In this document: positions 32,250 to 41,787 of the stretch, piece after piece
Numbering within the stretch: the stretch's first letter is position 1
Layout: each line of letters begins with the position of its first letter
Assembly (NCBI RefSeq): GCF_000143415.4
Contig: NW_003314338.1
Span: 838,771 to 902,770, forward strand
Source: Selaginella moellendorffii
Lineage: Eukaryota; Plantae; Lycopodiophyta
Length of the DNA: 64,000 nucleotides
Direction: 5' to 3'
Notes under the pieces: model-generated
Database searches by the model: none
The model's input: only the letters and a program-made list of their open reading frames with translations
What the model was told of the DNA's origin: nothing
Translations under genes and position numbers: made by a program

Positions 32250-33670
32250 CTTCCACCAGAGCTTCCTCGAGCTGCTTTGCTCGTCCCAGCATGCCGATCA
32301 TGCAGTGGTTGCTCAATGCCCGGATCTAATCCACACCTAGACATCATCTCCTGGAAAAACTTTTTGCCTTGCTCGATCATCCCAGCCCGGGTGCAAGTCG
32401 TTAAGTTACACCGTCCGGCTTGACACCCCCCTCACATCACTTGATCGCTGTCTCCCTGGCGGCTGTAGCCCGCGATAAGTGAGCTCCAACTCACAGCATC
32501 CTTCCTCGAGACCGAGCTAAAAACCAGCTCCGCTTCGTCCATGCTCCCACAGCTGCCGTAGAAATCGACCAACGAAGAGATCACGGCTCCCTGGAACTGG
32601 AACCCCAAGCTCGTGATCTCTTCGTGAAGTATCCGGCCAAGCCTCAAGGCTACCGAGCTTCCACCAGCTTTGAGCGCGCAAACGAGCGTCCACACGTCTG
32701 GAGAACATCCCTCAAGTTGCATTAGGAAGAAAAAATGTAAAGCAGTTTCGGCCTGGCTGTTTTCAACATACCCGAGCACCAATGCCGTCCAGAAGACTTG
32801 ATTTGGCTGGAAAATGGTGCTAAACACTCCAAGAGCATCGCCCATGCTGCCACAAGCCGCGTACATTTGGATCAAGAAGCTGTGAAGAAAGATATCCAAG
32901 CGATGCATATGGTTAGTAATTTGCAAGGGTTGCGCGTGAAAAGCCATATCTCTTTCCAGAGACTTCAGCTTGAGTATCCTTCCATGGATTGTATCTTCTC
33001 CTCATTCCCTCTTTGCTAGGGAAGTGTTGGCCTGGAACACCGCAACAAAGGTTCTGGCATTTGCTCCACTGCTTTCTCGCTGAAGCACCACCTCGCTCTG
33101 CCCATTCTCTACACATCCCTGCATCAAAGAAGTCCATAGAACTACGTCACGCTTTGGAGCTCCATGAAAAACCTTCCACGCATCCACCACGGTTCCACAC
33201 CGAGCATACATTTCCACCAGGCTGCTAGCTACGAAAGCGTTTGTGTCGATTCTTCGAAGAGCCATTCCTCTCTCGACAGAAGAAAACTTCACGACGAGCT
33301 CTAGATCTTGTAAAACCTTCCCATTTTCCTTCTCTGTGAGGCTCGCGCAGGCCTTGAGCAATCCAATAAACGTGACAGAGCTCCCTTGCAAGCCTCGCGA
33401 TTCCATGTCCAGGAAGAGCTGGAGCGCAACCCCGCCATGCCCATTCTCGGCATAGCCCAGAATGAGAGAATTCCACGCGACGGGGTCGGGGCAATCCATC
33501 CGGTCGAAATCCCTGCATGCCTCGCCCATGCTGCCGCACTTGCCATAGAGATTCACCAGGTTGCTCGTCACGAACGCATTGGAATCGAGGCCGCAGCGCT
33601 CCGCCTCGGCGTGGATTTGCTTACCCCGGGATCGAGAGCATTCCTTGAGCGACGCAAGGAATCTCCTCAC
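32250..33670 (-). pseudogene. PLS-class pentatricopeptide repeat gene, frameshifted
   Basis: GKQIHAE..GLDSNAFVTSNLVNLYGKCGSM; PVAWNSLILGYAENG; SLVEMYARCG; SLVDFYGSCGSMDEA; VSWSSLIAGY. The frame breaks near 33000 and 32430. Confidence 0.8.
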
Positions 33671-35792: not shown

Positions 35793-36528
35793 CAACAATG
35801 CAACACCCCTTGATAGACCTTGGCATGTCAACCTCTGCCATATCGCTGTTAACTCACAGGTAAAAAACATAACCATCCTTCCTCCAAAGTACCAACACCT
35901 TTAGAGGCGGCTTTGGGAGAAGCTCTGTTTTGTGCTTGATAGTAAAGCCGATCATCGTCTGCATTTTTTTAAAAAACTTTTATAAATAATAATAATAATA
36001 ATAGTAAGAAAATGAAAGAAACAAAGAGCTGCAACAATGGTTCTACGCACATTTTGTTGTCAGAGGAAGGACAAGCTTCCTCTCTATAAGTATAAAACTT
36101 TTTTTTTCGTTCTTTCTTCGCACCTCTTTTTGACGAAGATCTTCCGCGTTGTTGGTGAGCGACAAAGCTCACGAAATCTGCTTCTAGTGTGTGCCCAGGC
36201 TGCAGGCCAGCCACCACGCACAAGTACCACTCCCCAAGAACACCAAAACATCACTGCGACTAGAAACAATTAAACAACGAGAGACAAGACAAGGAAGAAA
36301 CGAGGAGGGGAATTGAGACCTCTTACAATCTTACAAGATTTGTGCTGAGCTTCTTCGCTTTGTTGCCTGCGTCCCGGACCCGCCCCCGGTGGGGGCAGTG
36401 AGACGCTTGTCGAGCACTGTGCACATTAAAAACTTTGGTTTCCCATCCACCTTCCTTCTCGCCTAGCTTGTCTTCCTCTTTTTTTAACAGCGCGGCCTGT
36501 GTAAGAGCGCGAGCAATATACTAGTTAG

Positions 36529-36535
36529 TATATAA
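36529..36535 (+). promoter_or_regulatory. TATA box upstream of the peptide precursor gene
   Basis: TATATAA ~130 bp before ATG 36666. Confidence 0.45.
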
Positions 36536-36665
36536 TTCCCCTGGGAAGCCCAGACTTACATGTATCCAGCAGTGTGTCTCTCGAACTTGCAACGCAGAAT
36601 TCCGCGGTCCAGTGGAAGTGCTCTCAGCAGAAGCAGCAGCGTCTTGATTCTCCTCCTCTGGAGAG

Positions 36666-37260
36666 ATGGTGACGACGATCATCAGTGGCAGGGCCAGGCG
36701 AGGAGCGAGGATGCAGCAAACTCTCCTCGCCTGGTTGGTTCAGGGGATCATGATGAACTTACTCCTCTCTGCAGCTTCTGCCAGATTGCTACTCCTGCAA
36801 CAGCATCATCACCGGGATCAAGGTAAGCTGAGATATCACAGAGAGAAAGAGTGCAGGAGAAATGCTCACACCTCGACAGCTCGTTTCAAATCTTCCAGAG
36901 TCGTCATTAAAGGCGAGGTTTTGCTTTCCCCTCACTCGTCTCGGCTTCTTAAAGAGGTAAGAGCTGGCACGAGCAATTCATTTCTCGCCGCATCTGATCG
37001 CATGGTTTTGGACACAGAGAGTTGTTTCGGATGGGCTGAAAGCAGCGGCAACAACTGCGGCAGAAGCACAAACGCAACGAGTCAGAACTCCGCTGCCGGA
37101 AAAGATATCTTCGAGATTTTCTCAAAAACAGGAGATCGATTTCAAGAGCTACACGCTGCATGACAATCGCCACCACCACCAAAAGCCGAGAGAGAGCGAG
37201 GACTACACCTTTCATGTAGACTACGCCGGACCCAAGCGACATCCTCCCCACAGTCATTGA
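36666..37260 (+). CDS. RGF/GOLVEN/CLE-like (CLEL) sulfopeptide precursor; exons 36666-36822, 36880-36956, 37018-37260
   Basis: Hydrophobic signal-like segment (MQQTLLAWLVQGIMMNLLLSAASA). Two GT-AG introns of 57 and 61 nt keep the frame. C-terminal 13-mer DYAGPKRHPPHSH (37219-37257) lies immediately before TGA. Confidence 0.85.
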
Positions 37261-37736
37261 CCCGATGTTCCATTCTCAGCCACTTCTTTCAGATACTTCA
37301 ATGCAGGACACTGCCAGCAAAAAGAAAAACATGTAGTAGTTAGAACCTGCTCGAAATCGAGTATCAGATCTTCTTTCACGGCGGGAAAATTCAGCTGCTT
37401 TTTTACCTTGTAAAAATTCTCCAATAAAACCTTGAAAAGGAACTTCAATCAGCCACGAAAGCATGGCAGCCTTACGCATAAAAAAAACAAGGACCTTGAT
37501 GAACATACCAGAAACCGTACAATATAAAGAACATTTGTTCAAGTCTCCCCAAAAACCAAGTTAGTTCGATCAATAATTGCGAAATCCTTACCTTCCCAGT
37601 ACAATAGAATGCTGATACAGGACTATAACAAAAAAGTATTATATAAGCGTACGGCAAAACAAAAACAAAACAAAAAGAAACCGTTATTCTCCAAACCAAA
37701 ACCAGCAAAGCCGAAGAATTTGCCACCGCTCTCAAC

Positions 37737-39379
<1,643 letters not shown>

Positions 39380-39509
39380 CGCCAAAATGCGACAAGCAAA
39401 TGCCAATTTATAGTATGTAGCCTAACTTCTATCCCGCGGAGTCGAACACGCTACTCCTTGCCAAGCACACGTCACGAGTTCCAATCCACTCTCTTTTCTT
39501 TTCTAACTT

Positions 39510-41787
39510 TCAGTATGTTTTTCTTCCATCCCCCTCCGTGATGATATCTTTGAACGAAGAACCGCCAGGAATCATCGGCAGGACGTGCTCCTGAGAGAAA
39601 AAAAATTTGGAAACTCTTTGAGCTATGGTCAATCGATCAACTGATAAGCACAAACCTGATGAGGAACAATCACGTCTAAAAGGTATGGCCCGGGAGTGTC
39701 AAGCATTTTCTGGATTGCTGCTTTGAGATTGGAGCGCTTTGTTACTCTAGCACAGGGAATCTAGCAAAGAGAAAGCTTTTAGAAAACGTACGGGAACAAT
39801 TCAGCAAACCTTGCATCCCTCGGCGAACTTCAGGAAGTCGGGAAAGATCTCGTCCTCGTGGTCAGGATCTCCAAGATAAGTGTGAGCCCTGTTTGCCTGG
39901 AGAAAGCACAGAGGTTAGAAAACGCTACTTAGTCTATCCGAAAGATTAAACCTTGTAGAATCTATCCTCCCACTGTACAACCATTCCCAAGTGCTGGTTG
40001 TTTAACACCATGATTTTCACGGGGAGTTTTTCCACGTGAATCGTCGCTAGCTCCTGAAATTACGAGCGGAGTACGTGAAATGAAAACGTTAAAGCTCGCA
40101 CCGACCTGGACATTCATGAGAAAACTTCCATCTCCATCGATGTCAATCACAGGAACGTCAGGGAAAGTCGCTGCAGCTCCAATCGCAGAAGGTAATCCAA
40201 AACCCATGGCTCCCAATCCTGTCGAGAAAAGTTGTGACACTCCGAAAAAAACAAGAGAAACAAACCTCCTGAAGTAAGCCATCTCCGAGGCTTGTCATAC
40301 TTGAACCATTGCGCCGCCCACATTTGATGCTGGCCAACCCCCGTAGAGATGATAGCATTTCCTTGAGTGATCTCGCACAGAGTTTGTATAGCGTGCTGAG
40401 GAGCAATGCAGTCGTCTCCAAACTCCACGTACTTCAATGGCCACTTGAGTTTCTGCTCCTCAAGCTCCGCTATCCAGCTTCCAACATCGGGTTTTACTTT
40501 CTGCTCCCTCAGCAGCAAGTTCAAGCTTTGAAGCGCTGGCTTTACGTCGGCACACAGCGAGACGTGAGGCTGCTTGTTCTTCCCAATCTCGGCCGGATCA
40601 ATGTCAATATGAACAATGCTGGCCCTGCTAGCGAATGCTTCCAGCTTGCCTGTTACTCGGTCGTCAAACCTCACCCCGAAAGCCAGAAGTAAGTCCGCTC
40701 CATCCACAGCGTAGTTTGCATAAACAGTCCCGTGCATTCCCAGCATATGCAGCGACCGCGAATCCGACTGTGGAAAAATCCCCAGTCCCATCAGCGTCAT
40801 CGTGATCGGGATCCCCGTGAGCTTCACAAACTCTCGGACTTCTTCGCTCGAGTTCATGCAACCTCCACCACAGTACACCACCGGCCTCTTCGAGTTTGCA
40901 ATCAGTCTCACGATCTGCTGGAGCTGCGCCACCTCCGGGAACCGAGGCAGCCTCTGCATGTAAGCGTTGAGCTTGATCGGCTGCGACCAATTCGGTATCG
41001 CAAACTGCTGCTGGACGTCCTTTGGAATGTCGACGAGAACCGGCCCCGGCCTTCCGGAGGAAGCCAAGAAAAAAGCCTCCTCGATCACCCGGGGTATGTC
41101 CTCCACGTTCATCACCAAATAGTTGTGCTTCGTGATGGATCGAGTGACTTCCACGATCGGAGTCTCCTGGAAAGCGTCGGTGCCGATCATCCTTCTCGGC
41201 ACTTGTCCCGTGATCGCCACCATTGGAACACTGTCAAGCGCAGCGTCGGCCAGGCCGGTGACAAGATTGGTCGCTCCAGGCCCCGACGTTGCTATGCAAA
41301 CTCCAACTTTCCCGGAAGCTTTTGCATAGCCCTCGGCAGCAAACACTTCGCCTTGCTCGTGGCGGCAGAGAACGTTCCTGATGCACGTAGAGCGAGTGAG
41401 AGCTTGATGGATTTCCATGGAAGCGCCGCCTGGATACGCGAAGACTATGTCCACGCCCTGCCTTTCCAGAGCCTCTACCAAGATGTCGGCCCCCTTTCTT
41501 GGCTCAGAATCGCCATAGCGCGACTGGAACAAGCTCGCTGGCGGCGATGCTTCGCTTTGCTTCCGAAATATCGTGCTTGAGCCTTGCGATTCCTTGACAA
41601 TCACTCTCGGCTCCTCAAACGGCTCTATCCCAGCCCGGATTCTACCCCTGCTGCTGGAAATGCCTCTCCGAATTGGAGAAATGAGCTCCGCCAACGAAAG
41701 ATTCTCCTCCGATCTTGAATTCAAGCCCGTGCTTCTGCGACATACCTGCATTGCAATCGCGCCTCCCGCAATGCCGGTGGCCGCCAT
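39510..41787 (-). CDS. ALS: Acetolactate synthase (AHAS) catalytic subunit; long first exon plus about 5 short 3' introns
   Basis: [15 protein letters not shown]; RHEQG; [17 protein letters not shown]; RFDDRVTGK; [10 protein letters not shown]; MVVQWEDRF; HVLPMIP...EGDGRKTY*. Confidence 0.97.

Follow-up and report, generated by a model that had tools for sequence, protein, structure and literature searches.

The window, by which we mean the whole 64-kb stretch of Selaginella moellendorffii DNA that was analysed, carries on its plus strand a three-exon open reading frame whose product ends in a peptide resembling those of the RGF/GOLVEN/CLEL family. The features of this gene and of its neighbours on the minus strand are as follows, by position in the window.

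36529–36535, plus strand: TATATAA, a possible TATA box read from the sequence, 131 nt 5' of the first ATG; the transcription start would be expected at about 36560–36570.
36666–36822, plus strand: coding part of exon 1; positions 36666–36821 plus one base translate to MVTTIISGRARRGARMQQTLLAWLVQGIMMNLLLSAASARLLLLQQHHHRDQ, which equals residues 1–52 of XP_024516468.1.
36666 and 36711, plus strand: start codons in the translation of exon 1, Met1 at 36666 and, in the same frame, Met16 at 36711.
36823–36879, plus strand: intron 1, 57 nt, GT..AG, donor AAG/GTAAGC, read from the sequence; the join is also in both RefSeq allele models.
36880–36956, plus strand: exon 2, a variable region that translates to RFKSSRVVIKGEVLLSPHSSRLLKE and ends SSRLLKE.
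36957–37017, plus strand: intron 2, 61 nt, GT..AG, donor GAG/GTAAGA, read from the sequence; the join is also in both RefSeq allele models.
37018–37260, plus strand: exon 3, 80 codons and a stop, comprising a variable region rich in His, Arg, and Ser, followed by the peptide (translation RVVSDG...SEDYTFHVDYAGPKRHPPHSH, then stop).
37219–37257, plus strand: predicted mature 13-mer DYAGPKRHPPHSH, preceded by FHV, at the extreme C-terminus (translation and pattern scan).
37423–37428, plus strand: AATAAA, a possible poly(A) signal read from the sequence, ~165 nt past the stop; the poly(A) site would be expected shortly after 37428.
37737–39406, minus strand: ornithine carbamoyltransferase gene (OTCace_N/OTCace; 369 aa in the allele), ending at 37737, convergent with the plus-strand gene.
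40147–41787, minus strand: acetolactate synthase gene (TPP_enzyme domains, 670 aa), 3 kb from the plus-strand gene.
32432–33670, minus strand: long open reading frames of pentatricopeptide-repeat character; the allele's gene call has faint PPR Pfam matches.

Both introns of the plus-strand gene have donors near consensus, and the codon split between exons 1 and 2 (G/CT) encodes Ala53. Intron 1 is in frame and free of stops, and its retention would insert 19 residues. Therefore, only intron 2 must be removed for the peptide and the N-terminus to share one frame. An earlier reading of this DNA from its letters alone (the sequence-only reading) had proposed two GT-AG introns and a 158-aa open reading frame, and the exon translations match both this proposal and RefSeq protein XP_024516468.1 piece by piece.

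A phmmer search with exon 3 against 1.84 billion representative proteins returns one match, S. moellendorffii XP_024518454.1, at 100% identity. The cluster of this match has two RefSeq members, XP_024518454.1 and XP_024516468.1, both from S. moellendorffii and both named "uncharacterized protein". XP_024516468.1 (LOC112341129, 158 aa) equals the three exon translations of the window. XP_024518454.1 (LOC112341851, 157 aa) is its allele on the second haplotype scaffold, GL377657.1, where it has the same neighbours. The 157-aa allele differs from the 158-aa protein by T3M, T19S, L41S, and the in-frame loss of Phe112 through a 3-nt deletion. These changes all fall outside the peptide, and the open reading frame and every splice site are intact on the second haplotype. 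A word-based protein search with residues 100–158 of XP_024516468.1 recovers the allele only; families defined by a short motif are beyond such a search. With the 80 aa of exon 3 as query it gives no match, a result of its length filter of 44–140 aa, which leaves out a full protein of 157–158 aa, and hence no sign of novelty.

Divergence between the haplotypes is flat, at ~1.6% over exons, introns, and flanks alike. The haplotype comparison thus carries no signal of selection and shows only that both alleles are intact.

The sequence-only reading had regarded the gene as hidden and as one that annotation could miss. NCBI Gnomon arrives at these three exons in each haplotype, so the gene is hidden only in being unnamed there; it is present in RefSeq but missing from the RGF lists based on JGI v1.0. 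Two published lists (PMC8329595, PMC8708909) agree on five S. moellendorffii models, taken from the JGI v1.0 proteome (404292, 407655, 412527, 438132, and 441866), and omit this locus, although its orthologues in sister species are tabulated in PMC8329595. We take these five models to be three loci, two of them represented by near-identical pairs that would be haplotype alleles. The 13-mer DYAGPKRHPPHSH is in none of the five (PMC8329595, PMC8708909), and it is absent from those supplementary files of Ghorbani et al. 2015, a study likewise based on JGI v1.0, that were compared. A full-text literature search, with supplements outside its scope, found no paper for the peptide or the RefSeq accessions. 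A 2026 pan-species RGF survey counts six RGFs in S. moellendorffii (PMC13503966), and its list could include LOC112341129. Most likely, the locus is an overlooked, unnamed member of the family. What is known already is the RefSeq gene model and an identical peptide from two sister species; what is new is its naming as a member of the RGF family.

The published lists also bear on a second peptide. S. apoda LGDQ-2043199 (DYAKVKTHPPHSH), a second Group H RGF-like sequence, has no S. moellendorffii counterpart in them. By extension from this sequence, a further unlisted RGF locus may lie elsewhere in the S. moellendorffii genome.

In its organization the protein resembles a secreted peptide precursor. 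The N-terminus encoded by exon 1 starts with a basic n-region, RARRGAR, followed by a hydrophobic core, LLAWLVQGIMMNLLL, at about residues 20–35. We assessed the putative signal peptide by hydropathy and the -3/-1 rule. The Kyte-Doolittle mean over nine residues exceeds 1.2 at most positions of residues 23–35, and SAASA/R is a likely cleavage site, after residue 39, as judged from the residues themselves. At 158 aa the precursor lies within the length range of RGF/GLV/CLEL precursors (about 40–280 aa, with a poorly conserved middle that lacks Cys and any folded domain), and it has no Cys after the signal region. An ESM Atlas model has a pLDDT of 0.50 and a pTM of 0.20, and past the signal region the precursor is predicted to be disordered. 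The RLLK sequence in exon 2 (36942–36953) fits the RxLx pattern of S1P/SBT6.1 sites. The likeness to RxLx had been pointed out in the sequence-only reading, and R-x-L-L stretches are also found in other lycophyte precursors (PMC8329595 supplement).

The 13-mer lies at the C-terminus, starts with Asp-Tyr, and has Pro5 and a Pro9-Pro10 core, like the peptides of the RGF/GLV/CLEL family. Its Tyr directly follows an Asp, the context found in known TPST substrates. A six-frame scan of the window for DY..P..HPP..[HN] gives a single match, at 37219, versus 0 matches in 300 first-order Markov shuffles; a looser pattern occurs 0.007 times per shuffle on average.

The 13-mer is identical to published lycophyte sequences of Group H. 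The S. apoda 1KP scaffold LGDQ-2004949, described as RGF-like, ends in EFKSYTLHQSRHHHQKPSESEDYTFHVDYAGPKRHPPHSH (excerpt SESEDYTFHVDYAGPKRHPPHSH), and the S. willdenowii 1KP scaffold KJYC-2010066, also RGF-like, ends in EAFVFHMDYAGPKRHPPHSH (excerpt FVFHMDYAGPKRHPPHSH) (PMC8329595 supplement). The comparison with lycophyte transcriptomes suggested in the sequence-only reading thus finds the same 13 residues in two further Selaginella species. RGF-like sequences of Lycopodium species end in FHVDYAGPGPHPPHSH (PMC8329595 supplement). Three features define lycophyte Group H: a His at position 8, conservation of His as the terminal residue, and a peptide located at the very end of its precursor (PMC8329595). 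The window protein has all three features: His8, His13, and then the stop. Accordingly, the terminal His, which had been called unusual, is the norm for Group H lycophytes (PMC8329595).

The likeness to the S. apoda sequence extends beyond the 13-mer. The SEDYTFHV in front of it is the same, the stretch FKSYTLH..RHHHQKP.ESEDY closely resembles the window protein, the precursor likewise ends with the peptide, and the contig runs colinear with exon 3 as well as with the flank downstream. LGDQ-2004949 is published as a partial C-terminal excerpt only, so that the comparison excludes the N-terminus and the exon structure. In S. willdenowii the 13-mer is identical and F-H-x precedes DY, but the upstream residues are EAFVFHM, versus EDYTFHV in the window, and there is no second DY. 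The second DY of the window protein had been proposed to allow double sulfation or a longer form of the peptide. Because this upstream DY is shared with S. apoda and not with S. willdenowii, neither double sulfation nor a longer form is likely.

Within the same species, models 412527 and 441866 (DYTPAAIHPPRSHGHNP), listed as RGF (PMC8329595, PMC8708909), share with the window protein membership of Group H, His8, the PP core, His13, a precursor of ~150 aa, and a signal peptide, which in the window protein is putative. They come from another locus, however, encode another peptide with four additional residues after the 13-mer, and are in the JGI v1.0 proteome. Arabidopsis RGF1/GLV11/CLEL8 (DYSNPGHHPPRHN) has Asp1, Tyr2, Pro5, His8, Pro9, and Pro10 in common with the window 13-mer, and both are the C-terminal 13-mer of a precursor of ~100–160 aa that is secreted or, in the window, predicted to be so. 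It differs at residues 3-4, 6-7, and 11-12, and its terminal residue is Asn, versus His in the window. Function, sulfation, and RGI binding have been demonstrated experimentally for Arabidopsis only.

Features of the whole protein point to the same family. In an ESM Atlas feature search, the protein scores 0.93–0.94 and shares 191–199 features with clusters that bear the names root meristem growth factor 8 and 10 and contain Pfam GLV1-2 and RGF3. The proposal that the gene encodes an RGF/GLV/CLEL precursor is thus borne out both by the identity of the 13-mer to Group H sequences and by the clusters into which the whole protein falls. In a Pfam scan, the precursor has no domain at cut-off. GLV1-2 (PF21529) scores 11.0 bits with XP_024516468.1, 15.5 bits with XP_024518454.1, and 13.1 bits with exon 3, below the cut-off of 28.1, and the sub-threshold alignment lands on the correct C-terminal residues. 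Just 13–14% of the members of the RGF-named Atlas clusters carry GLV1-2, indicating that this model covers the family poorly. A Pfam match to GCN5L1 was dismissed as spurious.

We compared RNA contigs from four runs (X1, X5, X9, and X17), belonging to four studies, over 36300–37700. The contigs are counted as RNA because they contain splice junctions; they show presence and not absence, and rare variants are dropped from them. All junctions seen read CT..AC on the plus strand, that is, GT..AG on the minus strand. The antisense introns are listed below.

36497–36559, minus strand: antisense intron; joint 36495>36559 (cut +1) in 4/4 runs.
36795–36871, minus strand: antisense intron overlapping the last part of exon 1 and the greater part of intron 1; joint 36793>36871 (cut +1) in 4/4 runs.
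37055–37208, minus strand: antisense intron that removes most of exon 3; joint 37054>37209 in 4/4 runs.
37311–37406, minus strand: antisense intron 3' of the stop; joint in X1, with a variant joint 37312>37413 in X17.

The donor GT of the antisense intron at 37055–37208 falls opposite the Tyr-Thr codons of EDYTFH. The main X5 contig (record 13) retains the intron at 37311–37406; it is unspliced between 37281 and a point past 37646. The contigs of the four runs contain no plus-strand junction, and neither the 36822>36880 nor the 36956>37018 join is seen; across intron 2 they are continuous, since this intron lies within an antisense exon. The RNA-junction check that had been suggested for the two introns therefore finds minus-strand splicing only, and sense expression is neither proven nor refuted by these contigs.

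The antisense RNA spans 36327–37648 on the minus strand, with at least four GT-AG introns and another exon to the left of 36327. A minus-strand coding gene was considered and rejected, as stops occur in every frame of all five antisense exons. A 2332-nt contig of X17 runs from the antisense exons past 37648 toward the ornithine carbamoyltransferase gene, upstream of which the antisense RNA is a continuation in the contigs, and in run X9 the depth of the antisense RNA is about one third of that of the 3' part of the carbamoyltransferase. The simplest reading is that this non-coding spliced RNA prolongs the carbamoyltransferase mRNA at its 3' end, as a long extension or read-through with several introns, antisense to the RGF gene over its whole length. 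Such RNA may explain why transcript-based searches miss the RGF gene or find the wrong strand.

The contigs of X9 and X17, labelled as organisms B and C, match the S. moellendorffii haplotypes nearly letter for letter, X17 with the variants of GL377657.1. These runs therefore provide no evidence of conservation across species.

Exon 3 itself is represented unevenly. In the deep runs X9 and X17 the depth is zero over 37099–37192, a part of exon 3 that is spliced out of the antisense RNA. Low-depth contigs cover 37027–37238 in X1 and 37099–37238 in X5, the latter with the 3-nt deletion of the other haplotype; they are compatible with either sense exon 3 or unspliced antisense RNA. One further X5 contig, at 36767–36900, is unspliced for either strand.

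These data bear on the best-surviving alternative, that a conserved RGF coding sequence is silent or nearly so in S. moellendorffii, either as a relic or because it is kept off by antisense read-through from the carbamoyltransferase gene. The exclusively minus-strand GT-AG junctions of all four runs and the empty, antisense-spliced part of exon 3 in X9 and X17 are what a silent gene would give, and the protein is absent from transcript assemblies, its only source being a single genomic contig for each allele. However, the open reading frame, the splice sites, and the peptide are kept on both haplotypes, and three Selaginella species share an identical 13-mer although the region preceding it differs. 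RGF transcripts are, moreover, rare and tissue-limited in 1KP data (PMC8329595), the low-depth contigs of X1 and X5 do cover 37027–37238, and the colinearity of the S. apoda contig with exon 3 fits a sense mRNA in that species. On balance, we consider a silent gene improbable.

In S. willdenowii, the KJYC-2010066 contig contains acetolactate synthase mRNA on the strand opposite to the RGF sequence (PMC8329595 supplement), which suggests, from the arrangement of the sequences, that the neighbourhood and its tail-to-tail orientation are conserved between the two species. The S. willdenowii RGF sequence was likewise recovered only from the reverse strand of a contig of a neighbouring housekeeping mRNA. 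Convergent read-through transcription might even act as a conserved switch that silences the RGF gene outside a few meristem cells, but we hold this to be a long shot.

A second alternative assigns the product to a different family of sulfated DY peptides (CIF/TWS1 or PSY-like). CIF and RGF peptides both begin with Asp-Tyr, are Pro-rich, and are sometimes hard to separate (PMC8462819). However, a peptide of 13 residues with Pro5, His8, and Pro9-Pro10 at the end of its precursor has the Group H RGF pattern, and CIF peptides are ~20 residues long with a different motif (PMC8462819), making this assignment very unlikely.

The weakest alternative, that the ornithine carbamoyltransferase transcript has a long, spliced 3' untranslated region in which an open reading frame with a coincidentally RGF-like end has arisen by chance, would suit minus-strand exons that cover the locus with stops in all three frames and local transcripts that are antisense to the frame, but it is effectively refuted by the motif statistics (~0 occurrences expected per window) and by the S. 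apoda RGF-like sequence, which matches over 20 consecutive residues at the C-terminus (ESEDYTFHVDYAGPKRHPPHSH, less one change further up), and the match of the whole-protein features to RGF clusters also argues against it.

We therefore favour the reading that LOC112341129 is a real three-exon gene of S. moellendorffii encoding an RGF/GOLVEN/CLEL precursor of lycophyte Group H, with a probability of about 0.88.

By analogy with Arabidopsis RGF, the signal peptide would route the precursor into the secretory pathway, where an S1P-type subtilase might cut at RLLK. As in Arabidopsis RGF1, TPST would sulfate the Tyr next to Asp, and one of the two Pro residues in the PP core would be hydroxylated. 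An Asp-dependent subtilase could then release the 13-mer DY(SO3H)AGPKRHPPHSH. Three RGI orthologues with the RxGG motif have been reported in S. moellendorffii (PMC8462819), and the mature peptide would presumably bind one of these LRR receptor kinases and act in meristem maintenance of roots or rhizophores.

S. moellendorffii is the reference lycophyte for the evolution of peptide signalling with roots. With LOC112341129/LOC112341851 named as a Group H RGF, the count of RGF loci in this species is corrected, and tests of expression and of the peptide gain a definite gene to work on. The picture of the family is unchanged.
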